Positions 1 through 13,152 of a stretch of DNA of 13,152 nt are shown here, piece after piece. The notes beneath the pieces were generated by a model. That model ran no database searches, was not told the DNA's origin, and saw only the letters and a list, made by a program, of their open reading frames with translations. The number at the start of each line of letters is the position of its first letter. Position 1 is the stretch's first letter. Origin of the DNA: Octopus sinensis (taxonomy: Eukaryota); NCBI RefSeq assembly GCF_006345805.1, contig NW_021826334.1, forward strand, positions 1 to 13,152, read 5' to 3'. A program made the translations under genes and the position numbers.

Positions 1-991
1 AATTTAAAAATATAAAATGGTGACAATTTACCCATCACATCTTGTACATAGCTCTATATATATATGCAAGCTATATTCCTCTTGAATACTGATATCATGA
101 GATTTTTGCTGCTTGCTTCATTCCCACGGTTTTCACTTGCCTCACTTTCTAATTGCTGGCAGTTAGGGTCAGATAAGAACATAAAAAACGAGTAAATTCT
201 ATTATTTACTCTCTATTTCTGCCATTGACATATAGAATATTATATTCCGTATATTTTCTTAGTCCATAGAATTTCATTTGCCTCTGATGTAAAAAATAGA
301 AGACATAGGATTTTTTGCACCTGCCAAGGTCAGTCGATTCAGCTATTATTGTTTGTCCTTATCATCTTTCAATCATGTTTATTTCTCCACAAAATAATTC
401 GAAGTACTCAACGTAAACATACATACGACACTATGAAGAAATAAAACCTGAAGATTATTTTAGATGCAAAATCTTCCATATTATTGTTACTAGTGGATGA
501 TGTATAATCCAAATACTGGAATTCAGATAAATAGGTTAAATCTACGAGAGATTAAAACAACGAAATATCAAAAATATTAACGTTACTATTTAGTTAATCG
601 AAGAATAAACGGATTTGCGAGAAAGAAAGGATACAGTAACAAAGAAATAAAAAGTTTTAATGTGATTATTGTTTAGTCAAAGTATTAATAACAGCAAATC
701 AACAAAGTTATTATGAACGACAAATATACTGTTTTAAAGTTTGCATTAATGATTAGAAATGAAATGTTAATATGCGATGTCTATTGAGTAATTTTATAAT
801 TATTCTGAAATATACATAAGTTTCATAATAATTTTTCTTAATCCTTATCCGAAATAGTTTTCTTAGATAAATATTCCGAATCTGCAGTTGGGCAAGAGAA
901 CTACAACGGAACAGTAGAAACAATAACTACTACTGCAGATTAATCGAAATGTTAACAACAGTGAAAAACGAGTTATTAAGACGATAATTGA

Positions 992-1134
992 TTCTGTGTT
1001 CAAATTCTGCCGAGGCTGGATTTGCCTTTCAGCATTTCGGAGTGGATAAAATAAGTACCATTTGAATACTGGGGTCAATGTAATCGAATTGCTCTCTTCC
1101 CTAGACATGCTGACCTTCTGCCAATATTTCTGAA
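992..1134 (+). mobile_element. 5'-truncated, diverged tRNA-derived SINE copy
   Basis: ttctgtgttcaaattctgccgagg...gcctttcagcatttcggag...gataaaataagtacc...ctggggtcaatgtaatcga aligns by eye to the B-box, core and tail of the copies at 3582 and 5115. Confidence 0.8.
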
Positions 1135-1146
1135 TGTAACACTTAA

Positions 1147-1836
1147 TAGGAGCTTTACCTTTTGACCTACATATTTAAAAAATAATTTTTTTGTAACTAA
1201 ACACTTTCAAACTTCGGACACTGGTAGATTGTGTCATATAAAACATATTTTACTCTTAGCAATTTTGAGAAAAACTTATATTTAGGAAGTTATTTCACGT
1301 TAAATTTGTCCTATTTCGGTAATTTCAACCAATCAATGACGTGTATTCAGCTGAAAAAAATTACTGCTGTTGTTTGACAACAAGAACTTCCGTTTGTCAC
1401 TGTTATTTATGACAACCTTAACCCTAAAACCCTAACACTAAGTCTAAAACCCTAACCCTAAAACCCTAACCCTAACCCTAAAACCCTAACCCTAAACCTA
1501 AAACCCTAACCCGAACTCTAAAAACTTAAAACCAGTACAAACGCACGAACGATGTCATAAATAACAGCGACAAATGAAAGATACACCGCCGATAGCTGTT
1601 GTTGACAAACAACGGCAGTAATTTTATTCAGTAATTTTATCGCGTCATTGATTGGTTGAAATTACCGAAATACGAGAACTTTAACGTGAAATAACTTCCT
1701 AAATATAAGTTTTCCTCAAAAATGCTAAGAGTAAAAGATGTTTTATACGACACATCTACCAGTGTCCGAAGTTTGAAAGTGTTTAGTTACAAAAAAGTAT
1801 TTTTTAAATCTGTAGGTCAAAGGGTAAAGATCCCGA
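1147..1836. mobile_element. Non-autonomous foldback/MITE-like DNA transposon with long TIRs, flanked by TTAA
   Basis: 1147-1341 is the reverse complement of 1642-1836, with about 15 differences by manual alignment (~92%). Patchy inverted homology continues inward to 1414/1553 (aaaattactgc, ctgttatttatgaca). TTAA lies at 1143-1146 and 1837-1840; a TA duplication is also compatible. No ORF. Confidence 0.9.
1416..1531. repeat. Interstitial telomere-like array of CCCTAA and CCCTAAAA units
   Basis: Parses into 17 units of lengths 6,8,6,6,8,6,8,6,6,8,6,6,8,6,6,8,8. The minus strand reads TTAGGG/TTTTAGGG. Confidence 0.95.
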
Positions 1837-2191
1837 TTAATATGTAGAGCAGCAGCTTTGATAAACAAGAGACCTAACTGAACAAAATAACTAATATGAG
1901 AAATAGGGAATACAAACGAAATTTCGATTTGCGTAACATAACTTCCTGTGTAGAATAAACTTATTATGATGTCGAATTGGTACATCAAAATTTGAACATA
2001 CATTATTGAGGTAAATACGTTTGTCGCCCGAAACACTGGGGAAAATAATCGGATAAATGTATAATTAAACATATATTGTGTAATAAAGTGATAGTGGAAT
2101 AAATATTGAAAGATTCAGTTTGACACCGCAAATATTTGTAATTTTGGGGAAGAGAATTTTGCAGAGTACGACAGCAGACGGCAGCCGTATG

Positions 2192-2400
2192 TAGATAGAT
2201 AGATAGATATAGATATAGATATAGATAGATAGATAGATGGATACTCATTTATATATGTATACATGCAAACAAATATATATGTATATATAAACAAACATAC
2301 ATACGCACACACAGACGCACACACTCAGATACACACAGGCACGCACACACACACATATATGTACGTAGCTATGTATGGATGCGTGTGTGTGAATTTATAT
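2192..2400. repeat. Compound microsatellite: (TAGA)n/(TATAGA)n followed by mixed TA/CA/TG
   Basis: Read directly; the TAGA block spans 2192-2238. Confidence 0.9.
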
Positions 2401-2771
2401 CTCTGAGGATATATCAAATGAACGTAATTCTCTTTCTTTGGTTTCTACAAACGTTAGTGTTGTACGTCTGCCACAAGGAAAAATGAAATTGAACAATCAG
2501 TAATGAAATCTACGAAGAGAGAAGACGAAATTAGGAAAAACATTATATAAAATTTATTTTGTTGTACAATATTGAATGAAATTTCTTATCTTCATAAACT
2601 GACGTATAGATATTGTTTAAAACTAAACTTCTTGTTTTTTCCCCTCTTTGGCTAAGATATTTGGTTAATATGTATATAAAACAAAAAGAATTACGTTGAT
2701 TAGATATACGCTTAGAGCAGGGAAAGGAAATCTTTTGTAAGATTTCATATTTTTTAAAAGTGCTAAAGATG

Positions 2772-2821
<50 letters not shown>

Positions 2822-2842
2822 ATATATAATATATGATATATA
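2772..2842. repeat. (TA)n microsatellite
   Basis: Read directly. Confidence 0.95.
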
Positions 2843-3158
2843 GTCGTTCGCCATATACAACAGGAAAAGATGTTGATTTAATTAGTTAGTTACCGCATAT
2901 GCAGTAAAATGAAACATATTCTGTCCGGCAGAAAGAAAAATACGAAAAGCAAAAGACATACTGAATATATTCTAATATTATACGCTATTGTCTGTATTTA
3001 CTTATCAGAAATGGTAGCCACTTTCAGGGAAACTCAGATATGTTTCATTTCAACGTGAAATAAATGGCTAAGTACATAGTACCAATTTCTCAATATTGCA
3101 ACACAACTAATAAGAATGTTTTCTGTAACTACGTTTATTATCACTCATTGAAAAATTT

Positions 3159-3162
<4 letters not shown>

Positions 3163-3194
<32 letters not shown>

Positions 3195-3243
3195 ATATAA
3201 TATATAATATATATATATATATATATAGATATATATATATAAT
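3163..3243. repeat. (TA)n microsatellite
   Basis: Read directly; abuts the 3' end of the hammerhead-bearing fragment. Confidence 0.95.
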
Positions 3244-3432
3244 AGTTATCCAACAAGAAAGCACAAAAAAAACACAACAGCGAGGACGTGGAACAAATAT
3301 AGTATTATTGGACGCTAAGGAAAGAAGGAGGGTTTAACGTTTCGAGCGGAGCTCTTCGTCGGAAACATAGGAGAAGGAAAGATCCAGAGAAGGGAAGACA
3401 GAGGAAAAAATCGCCAACGGTACACACGAGGT
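3244..3432 (-). mobile_element. Penelope-like element pseudo-LTR (3' end) fragment carrying a hammerhead motif
   Basis: On the minus strand a pyrimidine-rich leader is followed by a minimal hammerhead and a ~90-nt tail running into (TA)n. This is the pLTR architecture known for Penelope-like elements. Confidence 0.7.
3332..3366 (-). ncRNA. Minimal type-I hammerhead ribozyme motif (HHR1), predicted to act as a dimer
   Basis: Minus strand: GTTT-CCGACGA-A-GAGC-TCC-GCTC-GAAAC-GTT-AAAC. Stem I GTTT/AAAC, stem II GAGC/GCTC, loopless palindromic stem III (AACGTT), cleavage triplet GUU. Confidence 0.75.
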
Positions 3433-3434
3433 CA

Positions 3435-3505
<71 letters not shown>

Positions 3506-3515
3506 ACATTATATA

Positions 3516-3554
<39 letters not shown>
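3433..3554. repeat. (CA)n followed by (TA)n
   Basis: Read directly; CA spans 3433-3508 and TA about 3510-3554. Confidence 0.95.
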
Positions 3555-3557
<3 letters not shown>

Positions 3558-3581
3558 TAACAATTTTATGGAGGTAAAGAA

Positions 3582-3790
3582 GGTGGCGAGCCGACAGAAT
3601 CGTTAGCACGTCGGGCAAAATATTTAACGGCATTTCGTCTGTCTTTACCTTCTGAGTTCAGATTCCACGGAGGACGACTTTGCCATTTTTCCTTTGGAGT
3701 TCATAAATTAAGTACCAATTGAGAACTGGGGTCGATGTGGTCGACTTAGCCGCATCCCCTAAATTGCTGGCCTTGTGCCAAAATTTGAAA
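3582..3790 (+). mobile_element. Full-length tRNA-derived SINE (tail type A)
   Basis: Head ggtggcgagccgacagaatcgttagcac, B-box-like GAGTTCAGATTCC at 3654-3666, shared core, tail ...ctggccttgtgccaaaatttgaaa. Confidence 0.9.
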
Positions 3791-3823
3791 TCACTATATA
3801 GTAGTAATCTTTGTTATATTATA

Positions 3824-4644
3824 CTAGCGGGACCCATGAATATTTCACGAAATTAATGGTAAACCTTTTGCGTTATTTCTGAAAACTTTATCTAAAAAAC
3901 CTGAAAGCGTAACCTGTGTTGTGTCTGTGCAGAAAGATAGTCACTTATCTGCGACTCACTGATAAATGAAAGAAATTGGAATACGATGATTACTTAATGC
4001 ACTTTATATACTTTTTGCACCATTTTATAAACTTTATACACAGCACTCATAAAATGAATATACATTCTTATTTTTCGATTTTCCCATAAACAAAAATATC
4101 CCGTACATATGATATAACCTTTATTTAAATTGCATACATTTGCCTCGTAAATAAGCATGGATATTTCACGAAATTACACTTATACGCATGCGTTAAGTGA
4201 TGGGTAATATAAAAAACTTAGTTCATTTTTTCACCACGACCAACACCACTACCTCCACCGCCACCAGTTCCATCTCCACCATCATCTCTATCTCTCTCCC
4301 TCCTGTATCTCTCTCTCTCTCACTCACTCTCTCTCTCACACTCTCTCTCTCTCTCGCTCCTCTCTCTCTCTCTCTCTCTCTTCCCTTTCTTTGCCTTTCT
4401 TTAACCTCTCCATCAGAACACCACGCTTCTGCTAAAACTATTACGTTCCCTCTACCTCACGTCATGGGTGTTTCCCCCACCCTCTTTTTCCCCCACCCTC
4501 TTTTTCTCCCACCCTCTTTTTCTCTCACCCTCTTTTTCTCTCACCATTTTTCTCTCTCCCTCTTCTCTTTCTCTCTCTTCTCTAATCACGCGAAAACGTT
4601 ACCGACTGACTAAATAACACAATGACAAGCAGAATTATATTAAA
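3824..4644 (-). mobile_element. Possible degenerate non-autonomous Helitron carrying microsatellites
   Basis: On the minus strand CTAG|T lies at 3827-3823. The other end reads A|TTTAATATAA (4645), one change from the A|TC Helitron start. It contains CAC/CT microsatellites and a 21-bp direct repeat (3835-3855, 4156-4176). The subterminal GC hairpin is not evident. Confidence 0.35.
4285..4583. repeat. Imperfect (CT)n / pyrimidine-rich tract
   Basis: Read directly; source of the spurious Ser/Leu ORF at 4197-4613. Confidence 0.9.
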
Positions 4645-5031
4645 TCAAACAGTGCATATCCGCAGTGTCCGGCCCTTAATTTTAATTCAAGCTATTTTGT
4701 ATCAGTTACGCATGTGTTGTCCGCCTGTAAAGTGATGGAAATTATTATTTTAACCATATATATTCCTATTAAAGAGGAAATATGTGATTGGTCGCTCACT
4801 GTGCTAAAAATAGCAGTAACATTGCCTTCAAAGCACACCCAATCGCATTGTAAATGAAGAAAAATATTGCATAATGTGTTCTTGAAACTCCTAAAAGTTT
4901 GGTATAGACACAAAAAGATTTCCTTTTATAATGTCTCAACCCGAACAGGATTGGTCAGGAATTAATTATCAACAGGAATCCAAACATTGTGTCAAATAAA
5001 ACTTTACGTATATTGCAATTGCTATCATTAA

Positions 5032-5487
5032 TGGTTTCAAATTTTGGCTTAAGGCTAGCAATTTTAGAGAGGAGAGTAAGTCGATTACATCGATCCCAAT
5101 ACTGACTGATATACGGCGGCGAGCTGGCAGAATCGTTAGCACGCCGGGCGAAATGCGTAGGCGCATTTCGTCTGCCGTTACGTTCTGAGTTCAAATTCCG
5201 CCGAGGTCGACTTTGCCTTTCATCCTTTCGGGATCGATAAATTAGGTACCAGTTACACACTGGGGTCGATATAATCGACTTAATCCGTTTGTCTGTCCTT
5301 GTTTGTCCTCTCTCTGTTTAGCCCCTTGTGGGTAGTAAAGAAATAGATATTTTATTTTATCGTCTCCAAAACCATAAGACGCAAAGTTGACTTCGACGGA
5401 ATTTGAACTTAGAACGTAAAGATGCGGAGGAAATACAGCTAAGCATTTTTCTTTGATACACTATTAATTCTTCTTGTTTGCTACCTT
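5032..5487 (-). mobile_element. Older SINE (tail type A) split in two by a younger SINE insertion
   Basis: 5032-5112 is the reverse complement of the tail and 3' core (tttcaaattttggc...gtaagtcgattacatcgatcccaatact). 5351-5487 is the reverse complement of the 5' core and head (ttattttatcg...gaatttgaacttagaacgtaaaga...gctaagcattt). Confidence 0.85.
5115..5345 (+). mobile_element. Young full-length tRNA-derived SINE (tail type B)
   Basis: A-box-like TGGCAGAATCG at 5125-5135 and B-box-like GAGTTCAAATTCC at 5187-5199. CpG-rich, distinct tail ...gtctgtccttgtttgtcc...gccccttgtgggtagtaaagaaata. Candidate TSD GATAT at 5108-5112 and 5346-5350. Confidence 0.92.
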
Positions 5488-5883
5488 CAAATTAATATCA
5501 TTAATAATATTGCAATGAGATAAGTGTCACGCGGCTAAGTGTAAGTTACAGGTACTACTTACGGCTCACTTAATCTCTGAAAAGTTTAGTTTCGTGAAAA
5601 TGTGTGCACACTATAATATTTTCCTTCTTTGCTTTGTGTGACGTTTTGTTGCATTGAAGATCATCAAAACCATTACGATAATTATCATCACCACTATATT
5701 TTCTTTCTTTGTAGTTCTATTAGAATTTCACATATCAATCGACACTTTATTTCTTGTATAAAAATACATAGGTACATCGTGGTAAACAGGCATTCAAATG
5801 TTTAACACTTTTGTTGCGGAAAGCTGATGTATCCTCTCAAAATTTCAGTACCCTTAACTGCTGAAAGCAGTTTTATATACCAA

Positions 5884-6260
5884 CTAGCAGTATCGCCCGG
5901 CGTTGCTCGGGTTTGTAAGGGAAATAACTATATAAGCATTTTTAGAGATGTAAAGTATAATAGCCATCTCAATATGGCTAACCACTGTAGCTTTTTACGT
6001 TCTGAAATTTAATAAATTTTTAGAGAGTTACTTCCCTTATATATGCTAAAAATGCATTAAAAATGGGGAAAATTGATGGTAAATTTTTTTTTAAATCGTA
6101 GACTCATCGTAGACGCGCGCTAATACCCAGAATGGCTCGATATGAATCACGACTATAAGATACCCGGTTTTGGTTAAACTGCACCGCAAAATGTGGAAGT
6201 AGTTAGGAATCTAAATCGTAGGAGACAGACAGCACACAACCTCTCTTTTATATATAAAGA
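5884..6260 (-). mobile_element. Non-autonomous Helitron (377 bp)
   Basis: The minus strand starts A|TC (6261|6260-6259) and ends CTAG|T (5887-5884|5883). A GC-rich hairpin CCCGAGCAACGCCGGG (5911-5896) lies 8 nt before the CTAG. No TSD. All are canonical Helitron hallmarks. Confidence 0.9.
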
Positions 6261-6882
6261 TATATCTTTCGTGGAAGAATGTCATGTTTGAAACTATTTT
6301 CTGATGACATATATCAGGCTTATTGAAGCAACTTGATTTGCACAAAATACTAATTCATTATTTTGGTAGATGTTTAACATCGTTGTCGGAATAACCATGA
6401 AATTACATTTCATTGTGAAAGAATTAACGTTGATTAATTATCTTACAACTTAAGAAACCTAGTATTGTTATTTTTTCTAGAATGTTTCTAAATTTACTAT
6501 GATAGGGCATTCATTGATTTCTTTCCAGAATTTATTCTATATCATTAAGGTTGTGCAAATTACAAATAAACATCACAATTTTACATGCATTAATACCTTT
6601 ATTTTAGTTGCTAATTAGGCGCAATTCAAGTCTAAAGAAGCATGATTTTTCACAACACTATATTCATTCGATATTTCTAAATTAATGTTACATATACTTT
6701 TCTTTTTAAATTTTAGAGTAGAAAATTATGCCACGCTTCATATGTTTTATCAAGCGGTTTGTTTTCATCCTTGGGTTGTATAAAATGAGTGAATTCTCCT
6801 TTTCTAGTATATTAGATTGTTCATATATGTATTACTGTTCTTTTTCCCGTAGCAAACAATAAATGAGGTGGCCAAACAGATC

Positions 6883-7041
6883 ATGATATATACTCTCCAA
6901 TGTTCCCTCTGATTTTATCAACATCGGGCAGACTGGCTGCTGACGAGTCGATAGATTCACGGAGCAACGCAGGCACATACGACTTCGCAACGAGTCAACT
7001 CTCTCTCTCTCTCTCTCTCATCGTCTCGTCACTCATCTCTC

Positions 7042-7092
<51 letters not shown>

Positions 7093-7102
7093 GCTCTCTC
7101 TC

Positions 7103-7138
<36 letters not shown>

Positions 7139-7146
7139 CCTCTCTC

Positions 7147-7198
<52 letters not shown>

Positions 7199-7201
7199 CT
7201 C

Positions 7202-7251
<50 letters not shown>

Positions 7252-7265
7252 TCTCTCTTCTCTCG

Positions 7266-7319
<54 letters not shown>

Positions 7320-7980
7320 ATTACTCCACTCCTCCGTACTTGTCGGCCTTCAGCGAGATTACCACCGCCGAATTCCCTACCACAAACTGAATTGTCCACT
7401 TCAATTCTTCTAAATTACTTTGAATCTACTCCTGCTCCATGGCTATACAACTTCCCCTCTTCTTCCTACTCTCACGTCACTCACACTCTTACACTATCCG
7501 CATTTCACTTCATACTTCTCTAACATACACGATCGTGTCCTCTCAACACACCATCACCTACTCATACACCACCCTCATACACTCTTCCACCTCTGCCCCA
7601 AGCCTCACACTACTAACACACGCACGCACTTAACTTCTTGTAATAGTTTGTCCCTTTGTGACATACATACACATATGCATCCTTCAAATGCACATACCCC
7701 CTCTCACATCGACTTATTTACATAAACCCAGACAAAACAATCTTCACAAAACAAACACACACATACACATTGCCACTTTCACACGCTCCCCACTTTTTCC
7801 ACTTATACAAGGATATACGTATAACACACCGTTACAGCGATGCATCCCGCAACACCTTCCTTCACTCACTCTTTCTTCCTCATTTAGCCATGGCCATTTG
7901 GCTTCACAGCTATGGATCTTACCATGCTTCCCTCTTCACTGCCTTCCTCTCTACTTCCACCGACTCTTTAGCTTTCTAAC
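6883..7980 (+). pseudogene. Decayed Penelope-like GIY-YIG endonuclease plus C-rich 3' region
   Basis: 6883-6915 reads MIYTLQCSL*F. After a frameshift, 6917-6997 reads INIGQTGC*RVDRFTEQRRHIRLRNES, matching the PLE motif IY..C..C..YIGQTGR....RF.EH. Weaker continuation follows the CT tract (..SVLVGL.., ..HGYTTSPL), then a strongly G-poor strand to ~7980. Confidence 0.75.
6999..7316. repeat. 318-bp imperfect (CT)n/(GA)n tract
   Basis: Read directly; source of the spurious SLSL and RERE ORFs. Confidence 0.97.
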
Positions 7981-7983
7981 TCA

Positions 7984-8040
7984 ACACACACACACACACA
8001 CACACTCTTTCTCTCTCTCTCTCTCTCCCTCTCTCTCTCT
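7984..8040. repeat. (CA)n(CT)n compound microsatellite at the Penelope/mariner junction
   Basis: Read directly. Confidence 0.95.
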
Positions 8041-8049
8041 CCGATAATA

Positions 8050-8750
8050 AAATACCTTCATGGACTAGGTAATTGGTTGGTGGGTCTCTCATAATTTGAT
8101 TGCTTTTGGTCTTAATGTAAGTGTTGCCTTCTGCTCGTCACTGAAAGGTAGACTTGATGCTGAACTGTTTCTGGATAGAATCATAACAAGTAAGAAAAAG
8201 TGGATTCCCTATATGCACATATAACGAAAATGCCCACTTCTTAGCACCACCTAATCACAGAAGAGAAGCCATCGCGAAACCAGGACTACAGCAGGAAACA
8301 ATTATCCTCTGTGTTTGGTGAAATATGGAAGGTGCCGTCTATCATAAAGTGTCACACTAAAAAGAAACAGTTAATGCAAACAAATACTGTCGTCAATTGG
8401 AAAGCAGTTAACATTGATCAATAGTAATTGGGCGGGGGTAACTCTTACGCAATAATACAAGATTACATTTTAACCAAGTCTCTCAGGTAAAGATTATGGC
8501 ACTAAATATGGCGTTTTCCCCCATCTTCCTTACTCTCCTGACCTTACTCCAACTGACAATCATCTTTTCAGATGATTGCAACATTATTTAGAAGGAAAAC
8601 AGTTTAATAATTTTGAAGAGGTTAAGCATTATATTGGGTGCTTTTTTTTGCTTCGAAAGTTGAAGAATTTTTCGCCCGAATATTTCGCAACAAGTTGCCA
8701 AACAGATGAGTTTATTTTACCAACAATGAGGGAAAATATTATCTTGATAA
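8050..8750 (+). pseudogene. Decayed mariner (DD34D-type) transposase
   Basis: Motifs in order: WVSHNL (WVPHEL) at 8081, LFLDRIITSKKKW (TGDEKW), AKPGLQQETIILCVW*NMEG (LHPKKVMLCVWWD), ETVNANKYCRQL, LLRNNTRLH (HDNARPH), HLPYSPDLTPTDNHLFR at 8522-8572, and a C-terminus ..NNEGKYYLD. Multiple stops and frameshifts. Confidence 0.93.
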
Positions 8751-10179
8751 AATATATCAACTAAGACCAGTCTTCCCTATCATGAGATGCGACAAGACTT
8801 ATCGTCCAGTTCCATTTGTAAAAATCAGCGAGGAAATCGCTAAACCGGTGTCTTTTTTTTATGAACATCAGAATCATATGAATGTATTCCAACCGCATTT
8901 TACAGACGCTCAGTAGGCACTCTCAGTAAGCACTCTCATAAAGGCAGTGATCAAGCGTAGCCTGATCATCTCCTAGATGTGAAACTAAGATATATATATA
9001 AATATATATATATGAATACATCCAACTTAACCTGAATGTGTTGTTTAAAATGCTGCAGACTGCAGTGAAGATTCTGAAAATCATTTCGTGTAGACGACAA
9101 ATGCTAATATTCTATCGGCGGGTGGCAGTACAGTATCACAAGATTTCAACGTATTGTAGATCATCAAATATAGAAAGCCAAGCACCGAATGCTAGACTGG
9201 AAATCAGTCAAAGCTATATAAATTGATTAGTAAATATAAACAGAATAATACTGTCTGAACAACCGCTGATTTCGGGAAAAGTTGGTGGGTTGTGTATGAA
9301 TTATCTATTAGCTACAGAAGCAATCCCCGTAACGTATATTAATTAGCATATCTAGCTTTATTTTTAACGTTAGAAACTGCGGTGGACGTCCCGGTAAGTA
9401 ATTTTTTGTACGGAACAAATGTTGAAGAGCATCGATTTTGCCCGCAATCTCCGGCATTATAGACAACACGTCTAGGTTGTTTGCTAATTAATATTGTGTG
9501 CTGATTAGTATTCGTTACTAAGGTTGCTTCTGTTGCTAATAGTTAACACACTTAAACACATACACGCGCGCGCACGTATGTGTGTGTATGTCTAGAAGGT
9601 GTATTAATGTTTGCCATTTTGTAACGTACTCCATGTTTCAGTGTTGTTTTGTAGCATACAATGTGTAGATAAGTAAAATTTAATGTTTGTATATAGAATA
9701 TATAATAATATAAAGTCGAAGACATATCACATATTGAGCATAATAGATACTTAGAATCTTTTTATAAATATAACCGTCATATGAATGCAAGCTAGCTATT
9801 AATGTTTCCATTTAATAAACTCTTTCGCACATACTCTACAACAAAATGAATTAGATTGTTTCTAATCTTTTCACAGTGAACGCGTAATCTAGTTATAGCA
9901 TTATTTGTGAGCGTTTCTTTGTTAAATTAAAACCAAATTTTTAAATTAACTCAAGGATTTGTAATTTAAGAAGCACTTTATATGTAACTATGAACTTTTT
10001 TCTCGATAATGCGCCGACGAAGTTAATAATTCTGACAAGAATTAATAATCTGAAGCTGCATTTAGTTAGCTACCTCGGCAGAACTTGATAAGTGTTTTAA
10101 ATAAGCGATTAAAAAAGCTCTTTGTTATAGTGGTTGCATTTTGCTTTGCATAGAATATTACGTAATCGGTATTATATTG

Positions 10180-10391
10180 GCTCCACATTTTGGCACAAGG
10201 CCAGTAAATTTGATGGAGGGGTAAGTCGATTACATCGACTTCAGTTTTCAGCTGGTACTTATTTTATCGACTCCGAAAGGATGAAAAGAAAAGTCGACCT
10301 CGGCGGAATTTGAACTCATAATGCAAAGACGGATGAAATACTGCTAAGCATTTAGCCTGTTGTATTAACGCTTTTGCCAATTCACTGCCTT
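10180..10391 (-). mobile_element. Full-length SINE (tail type A) with a long target-site duplication
   Basis: Reverse complement of head, core and tail. Flanked by gtaatcggttattatatt (10162-10179) and gtaatcggtattatatt (10392-10408), which differ by one T. Confidence 0.9.
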
Positions 10392-10413
10392 GTAATCGGT
10401 ATTATATTAATAA

Positions 10414-10710
10414 TGTCTCTTGTTAGAACTTTCCACTAACTGGAAGGACTTCATCAGGGTATGCCGAAGCAATGGGTGGCAAGTGAGATTTGATTCCATT
10501 GAGGTGGATGCAGATAGTTTGTAAGTCAGACCTTTTACAGAACCTACAATTTGCTGGGAAGAGGCCAGTAGACAAAAGGCCATCAGACTGGCTGTGGAGT
10601 CTGTAGGTGTCGCCTCAAGGTGGCTGTAGGTCAAGAGTTGCGAGCCCTGGGAGAGGCAGTACAACTAGACACAATGATGTGTCCACGTGCATAACAGGAG
10701 GATGTTGAGA
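10414..10710 (+). pseudogene. 3' fragment of an RLE-type non-LTR retrotransposon (HERO-like)
   Basis: Reads CLLLELSTNWKD / FIRVCRSNGWQVRFDSIEV[fs]CR*FVSQTFYRTYNLLG[fs]RQKAIRLAVESVGVASRWL*VKSCEPW. This matches the HERO C-terminus pattern ELTVPWE...CR..GW......IEVGCRGF....AI.....A...ASRWLW. A short 3' UTR-like segment (gatgtgtccacgtgcat) follows. Confidence 0.8.
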
Positions 10711-11319
10711 AAAACGTGCGTAAAATATATTATACATATGATTGCTCTGAATTATTTCTTATCTATAAAATTCTATTTCCTGACGTTAACCATCGTAACA
10801 TCTTGTATATTTTGTTAATTACTGCGTTATTACAACGTCGACAAATACTAATTTCTAAATATCGGTACAGTAATTAGAGATCACTGGTAATATAGTGAAT
10901 TAAAATATTTGATAAGGAGTTAAAATATATAAATTTATTTACTCGGGTAACATTTTTGTATTGCGTCCTTTTGGTTGGAGAAACTTCTTGATGAATACAA
11001 CTCTTATCTGCCATATGTAAGTATTCTTCTCATTTCATTTGTAGTCAAATTGGAAAGGTAAGCTGCACTGAGACTAACACTGAAACTTTAGAGCAGTTAT
11101 CATCAGGCTGACACAACAAGAAAGACCAGTATGAGGTTCTCTTGATGAGAGACTCAGTTCAGGTATCACGCTTAAATTTTCCACGCTCACTGCCGAATAT
11201 AGGTGTTCAGGACATCGAAATTTCATTAGAATGAATGTAGGTTAGCGGTTGAGATATTTTAGCTACCAAAGTATTGTATTTATGTATATACCCATACGCT
11301 AATATATTCCACTGTCAAT

Positions 11320-11560
11320 ATAGATAGATATAAGTATATATTTACAGACAGGGATATATCTATGTGCGTGTGTTTGCGTATATATATATATATATGCAGA
11401 CACATATATACGAGTACGAGTGTTTATTTAATTATATCAATGTGTGGGAGTATATAAACATGCTGCATTAATGTGTGTGTTTGAGTGTACATACTTGAAT
11501 GTAAATGTATATAGGTATATATGAGAGTGCTTATGCTGCATATGCGTATATATATATATT
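11320..11560. repeat. Mixed TA/TG low-complexity microsatellite region
   Basis: Read directly. Confidence 0.8.
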
Positions 11561-12271
11561 TTGATGCATCATAACGATTTGTATTCCATTTTGTTTCGTT
11601 TTTCCAAAATATATTTGATTCATGCAATTACTGCATTTACTTTGTAGTAGCTCCAGAGTATTTCTTCTTTTTATGTCTGCTTTATACATTTTTATATACG
11701 TTCATATATTGTTTTCATATATTTTTCATTTATTAATCAGTTTGTTGTCCATGCTTCCGCAAAGTTTCGTTAATAATCCGTTTACTTCATCTTCTTTATC
11801 TTGCTCTTATTTCTTCTTTGCTTATTCTTCTTTCTCTCGCTTATCTGTTACTCATCCGTATTCCACCTCTTTTCTTCTTTTCACCCTTTTTCTCCTTATA
11901 CTATAATGAAGTCAAACACATTTATCCATTAATATACGCTCCTGAAACAGCATTAGATTAAAATAGCATAAGTATAACATTTAAAATGCATATGAAACGC
12001 TAAAAAATGCTAGACGTTAAAAGTTTACCACTTCTACTTTTATAGCCACTGTATAGACCACATGCCTATAGTTAACAGGTTGATCATCCTCAACAACCCT
12101 TCTTCTCACCCTCTTCTCTTCCTTACCCGCTTTTACACCTATCTCCTTTGCCCTGCCTCTGCTTGTCTCTATATTTCCAATTTGTAGAACTGATATTTTG
12201 AGTGTAAGGTTCTAAACCGTTAGAGCTGTACACTCAACACACTGGAACACGAAAATCTAATAGTATATCTG

Positions 12272-12366
12272 TAGCAACCTCCGATGAGATTCATTTTTAA
12301 AATGTTTTCAATTATATTAATTTGAAGAAGTCTTGAATCGAAACAGCTGTCAGAGATGATTGCCTA
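12272..12366 (+). ncRNA. Type-I hammerhead ribozyme motif (HHR3) with a long AU-rich stem II extension
   Basis: CCGATGA (12281-87), GATTCA, 40-nt loop, TGAATC (12334-39), GAAAC, AGCT, GTC (12349-51). Stem III ACAGCTGT is a perfect palindrome. Stem I is weak next to the core (CT/AG), with distal TAGCAA/TTGCCTA pairing. Confidence 0.7.
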
Positions 12367-12419
12367 TTTTATTATTAATAAGTATATTATTTAATTATCT
12401 GTCTATTTTTGCATTTTCT

Positions 12420-12437
12420 TATATATATATATATATT

Positions 12438-12499
<62 letters not shown>
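12420..12499. repeat. (TA)n microsatellite between two convergent hammerhead-bearing ends
   Basis: Read directly. Confidence 0.95.
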
Positions 12500-12503
<4 letters not shown>

Positions 12504-13152
12504 ATGTTACATTACTCGGTAGTCAAGATAAAACTCTGAGTTTCAGATGCCGAAGTGGAAATCCACAACACCATCTCTTCGGTTATCTGGCTATTTGAAA
12601 ACGTTTGAAAAAAATACCGTTAAATAAAGGGAAATACTCTGTTATAACTCTGCTTGCCTGCGTACTTATACATCGCTCGCATTTTGTCATAAAAATTATA
12701 TAAAAAACATAAAAAAATATATAAAAATATATAAAAATATATAAATTCTTCTTGGGACATAACATAGAAAGCATGTTCTATCTGTTTTCTTTAGGGGACC
12801 AAAAACGTAACAGAAATTAGTCACATGTGGGCATGATCCGAAAAGCTCTGTCCTTGTATTTAGACATGTAGTAGGGTCTAAGCTGCTTTTCCAGATAGCC
12901 ATCTTTCCATGTCGCATAGACCGCACCTTCCGCTGCCGTTAGTATAGGGCTTACATCTGGCCAAAATCTTCCATTGTATGTTATAATCGACACCTTTATC
13001 TCTTAAAGACCAATATGGTTAGACAATTGTGTCGCTTTTCTTTTGTTCCAGTGCCTCAAAGTGTGGTTATTGAACCTGGCCTTGAAATTACCCTCTGTAA
13101 GGCCCACGTATTTCTTCGTCGAAACGGTGTCTTTAGTGGTTATAGAGTTACG
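12500..13152 (-). mobile_element. Penelope-like element 3' end: GIY-YIG endonuclease C-half, AT-rich spacer and hammerhead pLTR (continues beyond the window)
   Basis: From 13152 the minus strand reads ..KKYVGLTEGNFKARFNNHTLRHWNKRKATQLSNHI[fs]WSLRDKGVDYNIQWKILARCKPYTNGSGRCGLCDME[fs]KMAIWKSSLDPTTCLNTRTELFGSCPH. This contains the YIG half-motif, conserved R/H, CxxC at 12925-12914 and CxH at 12833-12825. Confidence 0.88.
12520..12593 (-). ncRNA. Type-I hammerhead ribozyme motif (HHR2)
   Basis: Minus strand: TAGCC-AGATAA-CCGAAGA-GATG-[GTGTT GTGG ATTT CCAC TTCGG]-CATC-T-GAAAC-TCAGA-GTT-TTATCT-TGACTA. 6-bp stem I plus a distal extension, 4-bp stem II, stem III ACT/AGT, GUU site. There is one extra U before GAAA. 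Confidence 0.7.

Follow-up and report, generated by a model that had tools for sequence, protein, structure and literature searches.

The question raised by positions 1143-1840 of the DNA analysed here, a stretch of 13,152 nucleotides from Octopus sinensis (contig NW_021826334.1 of assembly GCF_006345805.1, positions 1 to 13,152 of the forward strand; hereafter the window), is how an array of telomere-like repeats came to lie in the loop of a long inverted repeat. The window sequence contains two inverted copies (arms 1143-1419 and 1548-1840) with a 138-nt loop between them, and a repeat search of the window resolved the arms into five collinear inverted blocks with 85-94% complementarity. The anatomy claimed in a preliminary description of this DNA, namely long inverted arms ending in TTAA on either side of a loop that contains a telomere-like 6-6-8 array, was confirmed. 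The parts of the inverted repeat are as follows.

Positions 1143-1146: left TTAA, read directly; it may be a target-site duplication or else simply the end of the inverted repeat, its final four bases.
Positions 1147-1419, plus strand: left arm, delimited by the inverted blocks and the alignment; non-coding and AT-rich, with stops in all frames.
Positions 1548-1836, minus strand: right arm, delimited by the repeat search and the alignment; an inverted copy of the left arm.
Positions 1837-1840: right TTAA, read directly.
Positions 1149-1191 and 1791-1833: inverted block 1, 43 nt, 91%.
Positions 1175-1229 and 1754-1808: inverted block 2, 55 nt, 93%.
Positions 1230-1341 and 1643-1754: inverted block 3, 112 nt, 94%.
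Positions 1351-1388 and 1594-1631: inverted block 4, 38 nt, 87%.
Positions 1387-1419 and 1548-1580: inverted block 5, 33 nt, 85%.

The unit without its TTAA ends (1147-1836) is ~690 bp long, and arms of ~273 and ~289 nt make up about 80% of it. A 23-mer from the arms is present, within the window, only in the two arms. Neither arm contains an open reading frame, stops being found in all six frames, and a protein-coding gene was rejected for this reason. No RNA family was matched in Rfam at the gathering threshold or at E<=1, and a scan for bacterial promoters and terminators, which is not relevant to a eukaryote, found nothing above shuffles. TRF identified no tandem array in the arms except a 13-nt duplication private to the right arm (1616-1640), which also has a 15-nt insertion placed at about 1581-1595 by reading of the alignment. 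Near the inner end of each arm is a small palindrome (1366-1383 and 1595-1612; TTGTTTGACAACAA / TTGTTGACAAACAA) that could be a subterminal motif or a product of chance. Folded as single-stranded DNA, positions 1143-1840 form one hairpin with an MFE of -222.7 kcal/mol, compared to -49 ± 5 kcal/mol for shuffled sequences (z -33.8), and the 138-nt loop stays unpaired in the MFE fold.

The arms have not decayed evenly. In the global alignment, their outer parts (1143-1341) are identical at 185 of 197 positions, which is 93.9%, or 92.5% with three gap columns counted, in agreement with the about 92% reported earlier for the outer ~195 bp; the inner parts (1342-1419) are identical at 63 of 76 positions (82.9%) and account for 21 of the 24 gap columns. 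The inner arms are ~3 times more diverged than the outer arms (mismatches at 13/76 versus 12/197 positions; Fisher p 0.0086), a difference unlikely to be due to chance. Overall there are 25 substitutions and six gap events, and three differences are found in the outermost 11 alignment columns. An assembly or sequencing artefact, such as a chimeric foldback read, would belong to a known class, that of artefactual palindromes, but artefactual foldbacks are near-perfect, whereas these arms are separated by the substitutions and indel events just given and enclose an asymmetric loop, making this explanation barely credible. A perfect-palindrome assembly artefact in particular was rejected because the arms differ by about 6-19%.

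The loop is made up of two parts.

Positions 1416-1531, plus strand (C-strand): telomere-like array built from CCCTAA and CCCTAAAA, arranged for the most part as 6-6-8 (20-bp unit), from TRF and a parse of the units.
Positions 1532-1547, plus strand: the rest of the loop, CCAGTACAAACGCACG, unique sequence that separates the array from the right arm; it stays unpaired in the MFE fold and has no counterpart in the left arm.

By our own parse, the unit lengths over 1416-1531 are 6,8,6,6,8,6,8,6,6,8,6,6,8,6,6,9,7. TRF detected a period of 20 at 1448-1523 (3.8 copies, 92% matches) and periods of 14 and 34 over 1414-1512, with matches for the array of 87-92% in all. With one mismatch or none allowed, CCCTAACCCTAA occurs eight times, always within 1416-1515, where 0.04 occurrences would be expected. 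The units are purest in the middle of the array and decayed at both edges, and the earlier term "higher-order array" has to be qualified: there are only about four to five copies of the 20-bp unit. TTAGGG is the sole experimentally determined telomere motif of cephalopods (PMC13218726), and since the DNA is from an octopus, the loop array may be regarded as host-type telomere repeat with a TTTTAGGG variant, which strengthens the label "telomere-like" that it had been given from its letters. It is proposed to be a passenger, not a working telomere. All CCCTAA-type units point one way; a relic of telomere-telomere fusion, which would be head to head, was ruled out on this ground. The position of the array is asymmetric, its first unit overlapping the inner end of the left arm and its last unit ending 16 nt from the right arm. 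Its G-strand begins after ...CTGG, and decay of the first units obscures whether they are in register.

The preliminary description also drew attention to G-quadruplexes and to a cruciform.

Positions 1450-1492, minus strand: G-quadruplex motif in which loops of TTA or TTTTA (3 or 5 nt) separate seven GGG tracts, from a regex scan, denoting sequence potential only.

The motif as claimed is thus present: four G3 tracts separated by loops of 1-7 nt would suffice, the minus strand of 1450-1492 has seven, and the plus strand is, in potential, an i-motif-prone C-strand. It is one of only two G-quadruplex motifs in the window. The other is on the minus strand at 4474-4498, inside a 16-nt C-rich minisatellite (TTTCCCCCACCCTCTT) of about 4-6 copies at 4471-4583. 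Cruciform extrusion from duplex DNA requires short spacers. With a 138-nt spacer and mismatched arms (6-17%), extrusion from the duplex is unlikely in the present case, and it is doubtful on physical grounds that the G-quadruplex-prone strand lies at a cruciform tip. It is plausible as a model that single-stranded DNA folds into a hairpin during replication, in which case the C-strand array or, on the other template, the G-strand array would remain unpaired.

The surroundings of the hairpin are those of a repeat-rich genome. The window is 35% G+C and contains no gene-like open reading frame; the only stop-free segment that looked protein-like by eye belongs to a relic of a transposase. Its dispersed repeats are listed below.

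Positions ~930-1138 (plus strand), 3580-3790 (plus), 5115-5280 (plus), 5352-5448 (minus) and 10192-10391 (minus): copies of a SINE of ~218 nt.
Positions 8068-8900, plus strand: mariner-type transposase relic with several frameshifts and stops, in which the motif ...PYSPDLTPTDNHLF... is still readable.

The SINE, with at least five copies in the window, is common to Octopus bimaculoides, where a 76-kb stretch of chromosome CM046612.1 has many copies with up to 91% identity. A clean target duplication of 17 nt (AATATAATACCGATTAC) directly adjoins both ends of the copy at 10192-10391. The ~930-1138 copy, old and with indels, ends a few bases before the left TTAA of the hairpin; when the joined flanks of the hairpin were compared with other SINE copies as paralogous empty sites, the SINE was found to end at ~1138-1142, and the junction to be unique DNA. 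The mariner relic, of which the best database match is a 342-aa mariner transposase (PF01359) with 59% identity, and the hairpin element have unrelated termini. Microsatellites are very abundant, with a 318-bp (CT)n tract at 6999-7316 and further tracts at 2772-2842, 3163-3241, 3433-3553, 4285-4381 and 12420-12499; several are (AT)n, (CA)n or (TC)n, which fits a cephalopod genome. The O. bimaculoides stretch has, at its positions 11003-12104, a near-perfect palindrome with 551-nt arms (99%), (CTAT)n on the left and (ATAG)n on the right, which may be real or an effect of assembly.

Other copies of the element were sought by several routes. Exact 19-21-mers from the two best-conserved arm blocks were not found in viral, JGI metagenome or GTDB contigs, where coverage of the host is negligible, nor was a two-unit 40-mer of the 8-6-6 array found in viral contigs, where the host is barely covered. 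A 48-aa pseudo-ORF of the arm had no match among 5.8 billion proteins, a collection that also barely covers the host, and three ORFs of the window had no match in an exact look-up. The SINE served as a control: it has ~25 BLAST matches in 89 kb of host-type DNA and must be very abundant in the genome, yet its pseudo-ORF retrieved only four proteins, among them two "uncharacterized proteins" of Octopus bimaculoides. The host is therefore hardly covered, and the empty searches of collections and proteins carry no weight on the copy number. In host-type DNA itself, the only BLASTN match of the element was a short telomeric tract, the DNA compared being 76 kb of O. bimaculoides and two short contigs (the mariner relic as a query had two matches on short contigs); no copy was present in the 76 kb or in a further 1.7 kb, and no further copy of an arm was found in the 89 kb that hold the ~25 SINE matches. 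Transposon status is plausible from the sequence of this single copy.

Inverted pairs of SINE copies at ~100-1100 nt are common, for example 5178-5244/5353-5419 in the window and several in the O. bimaculoides stretch, and the arms might by analogy be two independent head-to-head insertions of a ~280-bp dispersed repeat with an unrelated telomeric tract between them. Such a coincidence is very improbable: the arms are not SINE and lack another copy in the 89 kb, both stop at the same bases at both ends, and their outer parts are 94% alike, as against 74-81% for SINE pairs in the CM046612.1 stretch.

The class of element to which the hairpin might belong was considered from its structure and termini. 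As in foldback elements, long inverted arms account for most of its length. The arms of classical foldback elements are themselves composed of tandem subrepeats, whereas TRF found the arms of this element not to be so composed. Because its arms are unique sequence, not subrepeat arrays, the element does not appear to be a classical FB-type foldback; non-coding, with terminal inverted repeats and 690 bp long (generic MITEs being shorter than ~800 bp), it is better described, from sequence features, as a long-TIR, MITE-like hairpin. It is most likely a decayed, non-coding, foldback-like class II element of the hairpin-MITE type, occupying ~690 bp (1147-1836) directly after the SINE 3′ end.

Its termini are 5′-TA...GA-3′, the right end reading TC inward. 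The termini of piggyBac elements are typically CC...GG. Under the broader 5′-YY...RR-3′ pattern of piggyBac, the element does not conform as a whole but has one conforming end, the right. Kolobok elements make TTAA duplications and have 5′-RR..YY-3′ termini (PMC9587614), as had been correctly stated, and 5′-TA...GA-3′ does not fit them. The preliminary conclusion that the termini fit neither rule accordingly stands for Kolobok and for the left end, where TA breaks the YY rule, but is slightly overstated, since TC at the right end agrees with piggyBac. TTAA has a frequency of 0.85% per position in the window. Being palindromic, it may simply form the end of the repeat, as its final four bases, and not a target duplication, in which case the probability of finding it at both ends by chance is about 1-4%, not the square of such a figure. 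In Octopus vulgaris, piggyBac has been recently active, with six families and 474 of 3243 recent TIR insertions (PMC13282606).

The explanation favoured, though only tentatively and at somewhat less than even probability, is that a non-autonomous long-TIR element, now decayed, occupies a TTAA site and that its fragile centre was repaired with telomerase-made repeats that later underwent slippage. According to this explanation, a TTAA-targeting transposase would have moved the element in trans, a piggyBac-like enzyme being likelier than Kolobok. Long near-palindromes break centrally, as work on palindromes in yeast and mammals has established, and an element of this shape would have been prone to breaks at its centre. 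Telomerase would have healed a central break by adding TTAGGG repeats to the minus-strand 3′ end (...GTACTGG), while sequence on the far side of the break would have been lost, leaving the array to abut the left arm. The 20-bp 6-6-8 unit would have arisen when one unit gained AA and replication slippage followed; the edges of the array would have decayed, and the enlarged 138-nt spacer would stabilise the inverted repeat. The element would not have moved since, its arms having diverged over roughly 9-14 My; this age is the halved JC distance between the arms (0.064 for the outer arms, 0.098 for all) divided by an octopus calibration of JC 0.09 per 25 My (PMC13282606), and it assumes that the arms were identical at origin.

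The transposon part of this explanation draws on the sharp ends of the inverted repeat, which coincide with TTAA on both sides, on a size, an absence of reading frames and an AT-richness typical of non-autonomous TIR elements, and, by analogy, on the recently active TTAA-type elements of octopus genomes (PMC13282606). The repair part draws on the asymmetry of the array, flush with one arm and offset from the other, and on the excess decay of the inner arms, which together with most of the indel columns would be the look expected of a repaired unstable centre. Telomeric repeats are documented to be inserted at double-strand breaks, often with deletion of the flank and with 3′ nucleotides in register (PMC7215372, PMC2246262).

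A smaller instance was noticed in the CM046612.1 stretch of O. bimaculoides (69660-69705), where one SINE copy has a private insertion of ~31 nt that includes (TTAGGG)~4 and is flanked by duplicated ...TGCTTAG of the SINE head and absent from other copies. It has the look of telomeric repeats inserted at a break, with the 3′ end (TTAG) in register, and indicates that telomeric insertions occur in octopus repeats.

Against the combination of relic and repair, a single copy is known: the DNA searched yielded neither another family member nor an empty site nor an autonomous partner. The relic is further opposed by termini that depart from Kolobok and, on the left, from the piggyBac YY, and a telomerase origin by the expectation that its product should start as pure TTAGGG, so that the 6-6-8 pattern requires several later steps. 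We infer, rather than take from a documented case, that telomerase may have healed a central break at a transposon palindrome.

A rather unlikely alternative is a one-off break repair that involved no transposon, with repeats added and the flank copied in inverted orientation. A break after the SINE 3′ end would have exposed the minus-strand 3′ end ...GTACTGG for telomerase to add TTAGGG, and the new 3′ end would have folded back or switched template to copy ~290 nt of the flank, the joined copy becoming the left arm and the right arm being ancestral unique DNA. The array is exactly central, and its G-strand runs 5′ to 3′ from the right-arm side toward the left arm, which starts at or overlaps the end of the array, with the 16 unique bases preceding the right arm, all in keeping with such a course; error-prone synthesis near the switch point could account for the decayed inner arms, and the lack of a second arm copy across 89 kb of host-type DNA is likewise in its favour. 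Among telomeric-repeat insertions of the horse, some have inversions or inverted duplications, three of 66 loci being "complex including inversions", but the documented inverted duplications are of 38 and 53 bp (PMC7215372), not ~290 bp. One-off repair must also treat TTAA at both repeat ends as the roughly 1-4% coincidence estimated above, and the candidate for a SINE target duplication that would show positions 1142 and 1532 to have been contiguous (CAGTAGAAAC versus CAGTACAAAC; 912-921 and 1533-1542, 9 of 10 matching) is at the level of chance, its best local score being 8.5 compared to a null mean of 8.66, and was discarded.

The preliminary description had taken the array to be constitutive in a family of foldback elements or MITEs, each transposition seeding a G-quadruplex-prone telomere-like site, and this reading is doubtful. 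It is improbable, in its specific form, that octopus has a family of TTAA-flanked hairpins with a telomere-derived 20-bp (8-6-6) minisatellite in the loop that scatters such sites by transposition. Elements with internal tandem repeats are documented (Xenopus miDNA4/Xstir, Donax MITEs, oyster Helentron derivatives and Drosophila Tetris; PMC12628747, PMC9659126, PMC7492417). The array has decayed about as much as the arms (TRF matches of 87-92% versus 91% arm identity), which is compatible with its presence at insertion, and its 20-bp higher-order unit resembles an established minisatellite, not a fresh product of telomerase. However, a second copy was not seen, the open-access literature yielded no case of telomeric repeats in the loop of a MITE or foldback family, and the asymmetric array and decayed inner arms are more simply read as a scar of local repair.

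In a rough weighing, the TTAA ends favour a transposon perhaps 5-10 fold, while the orientation of the array and its flush junction favour one-off repair similarly; the base rates of relic repair, one-off repair and family-borne array loci are all small and poorly known. The probability that remains beyond these three is divided among two inverted insertions, an artefact and readings not listed here.

The consequences depend on whether the array is private to this copy. If it is, the locus would be a small natural meeting of two known processes, the instability of inverted-repeat centres and break healing of the telomerase type, and of modest interest. If it is family-wide, interstitial telomeric sites would multiply by transposition and not by separate repair events, and the hairpin family would be a transposon-borne source of interstitial telomeric sequences that are G-quadruplex- and i-motif-prone, bind telomere proteins and are potential fragile sites. 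It would then bear on the origin of fragile sites, G-quadruplexes and telomere-protein sites in cephalopod genomes, which have undergone large-scale reshuffling.

Several known systems resemble parts of this locus. The CMITEs of corals, which are linked to piggyBac-like transposons (PMC2872659), are likewise small and non-coding, with inverted termini and TTAA at both ends, and the host group also carries active piggyBac families (PMC13282606); the element differs from piggyBac-type MITEs in its left terminus, TA instead of YY, and in the length of its arms, ~80% of the element. Kolobok and its MITEs (PMC9587614) share the TTAA flanks, and Kolobok is present in molluscs, but 5′-TA...GA-3′ is at odds with the RR..YY signature. 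Drosophila FB and Tetris elements (Dias et al. 2014, via PMC9659126 and PMC12628747) have very long inverted arms, a short middle and strong hairpin potential in common with this element, in which repetition is confined to the loop and the arms are unique sequence.

A tandem array in the middle of the element is shared with Xenopus miDNA4/Xstir, the MITEs of Donax trunculus and the oyster Cg170-type elements, and in such tandem-repeat MITE and Helentron families the copy number of the array shifts by slippage (PMC12628747, PMC7492417). There the array is established as family-wide, whereas one copy is known here. The units of those families are satellite-like and far longer than 20 bp, and are not known to be telomeric.

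Short interstitial telomeric sequences of the kind described by the Nergadze/Giulotto model (PMC7215372, PMC2246262, PMC8537989) resemble the loop in being short internal tracts in which the host telomere repeat runs one way and the flanks are modified. In some of them the flanks have also been duplicated in inverted orientation. Most such tracts are of near-perfect hexamers, unlike the decayed 6-6-8 array of the element, which is centred in a 270-bp inverted repeat. As an internal, one-orientation tract of host telomere repeat, positions 1416-1531 belong with these sequences, and the locus is best classed as a long-TIR non-autonomous element or an inverted duplication, plus a short interstitial telomeric sequence.
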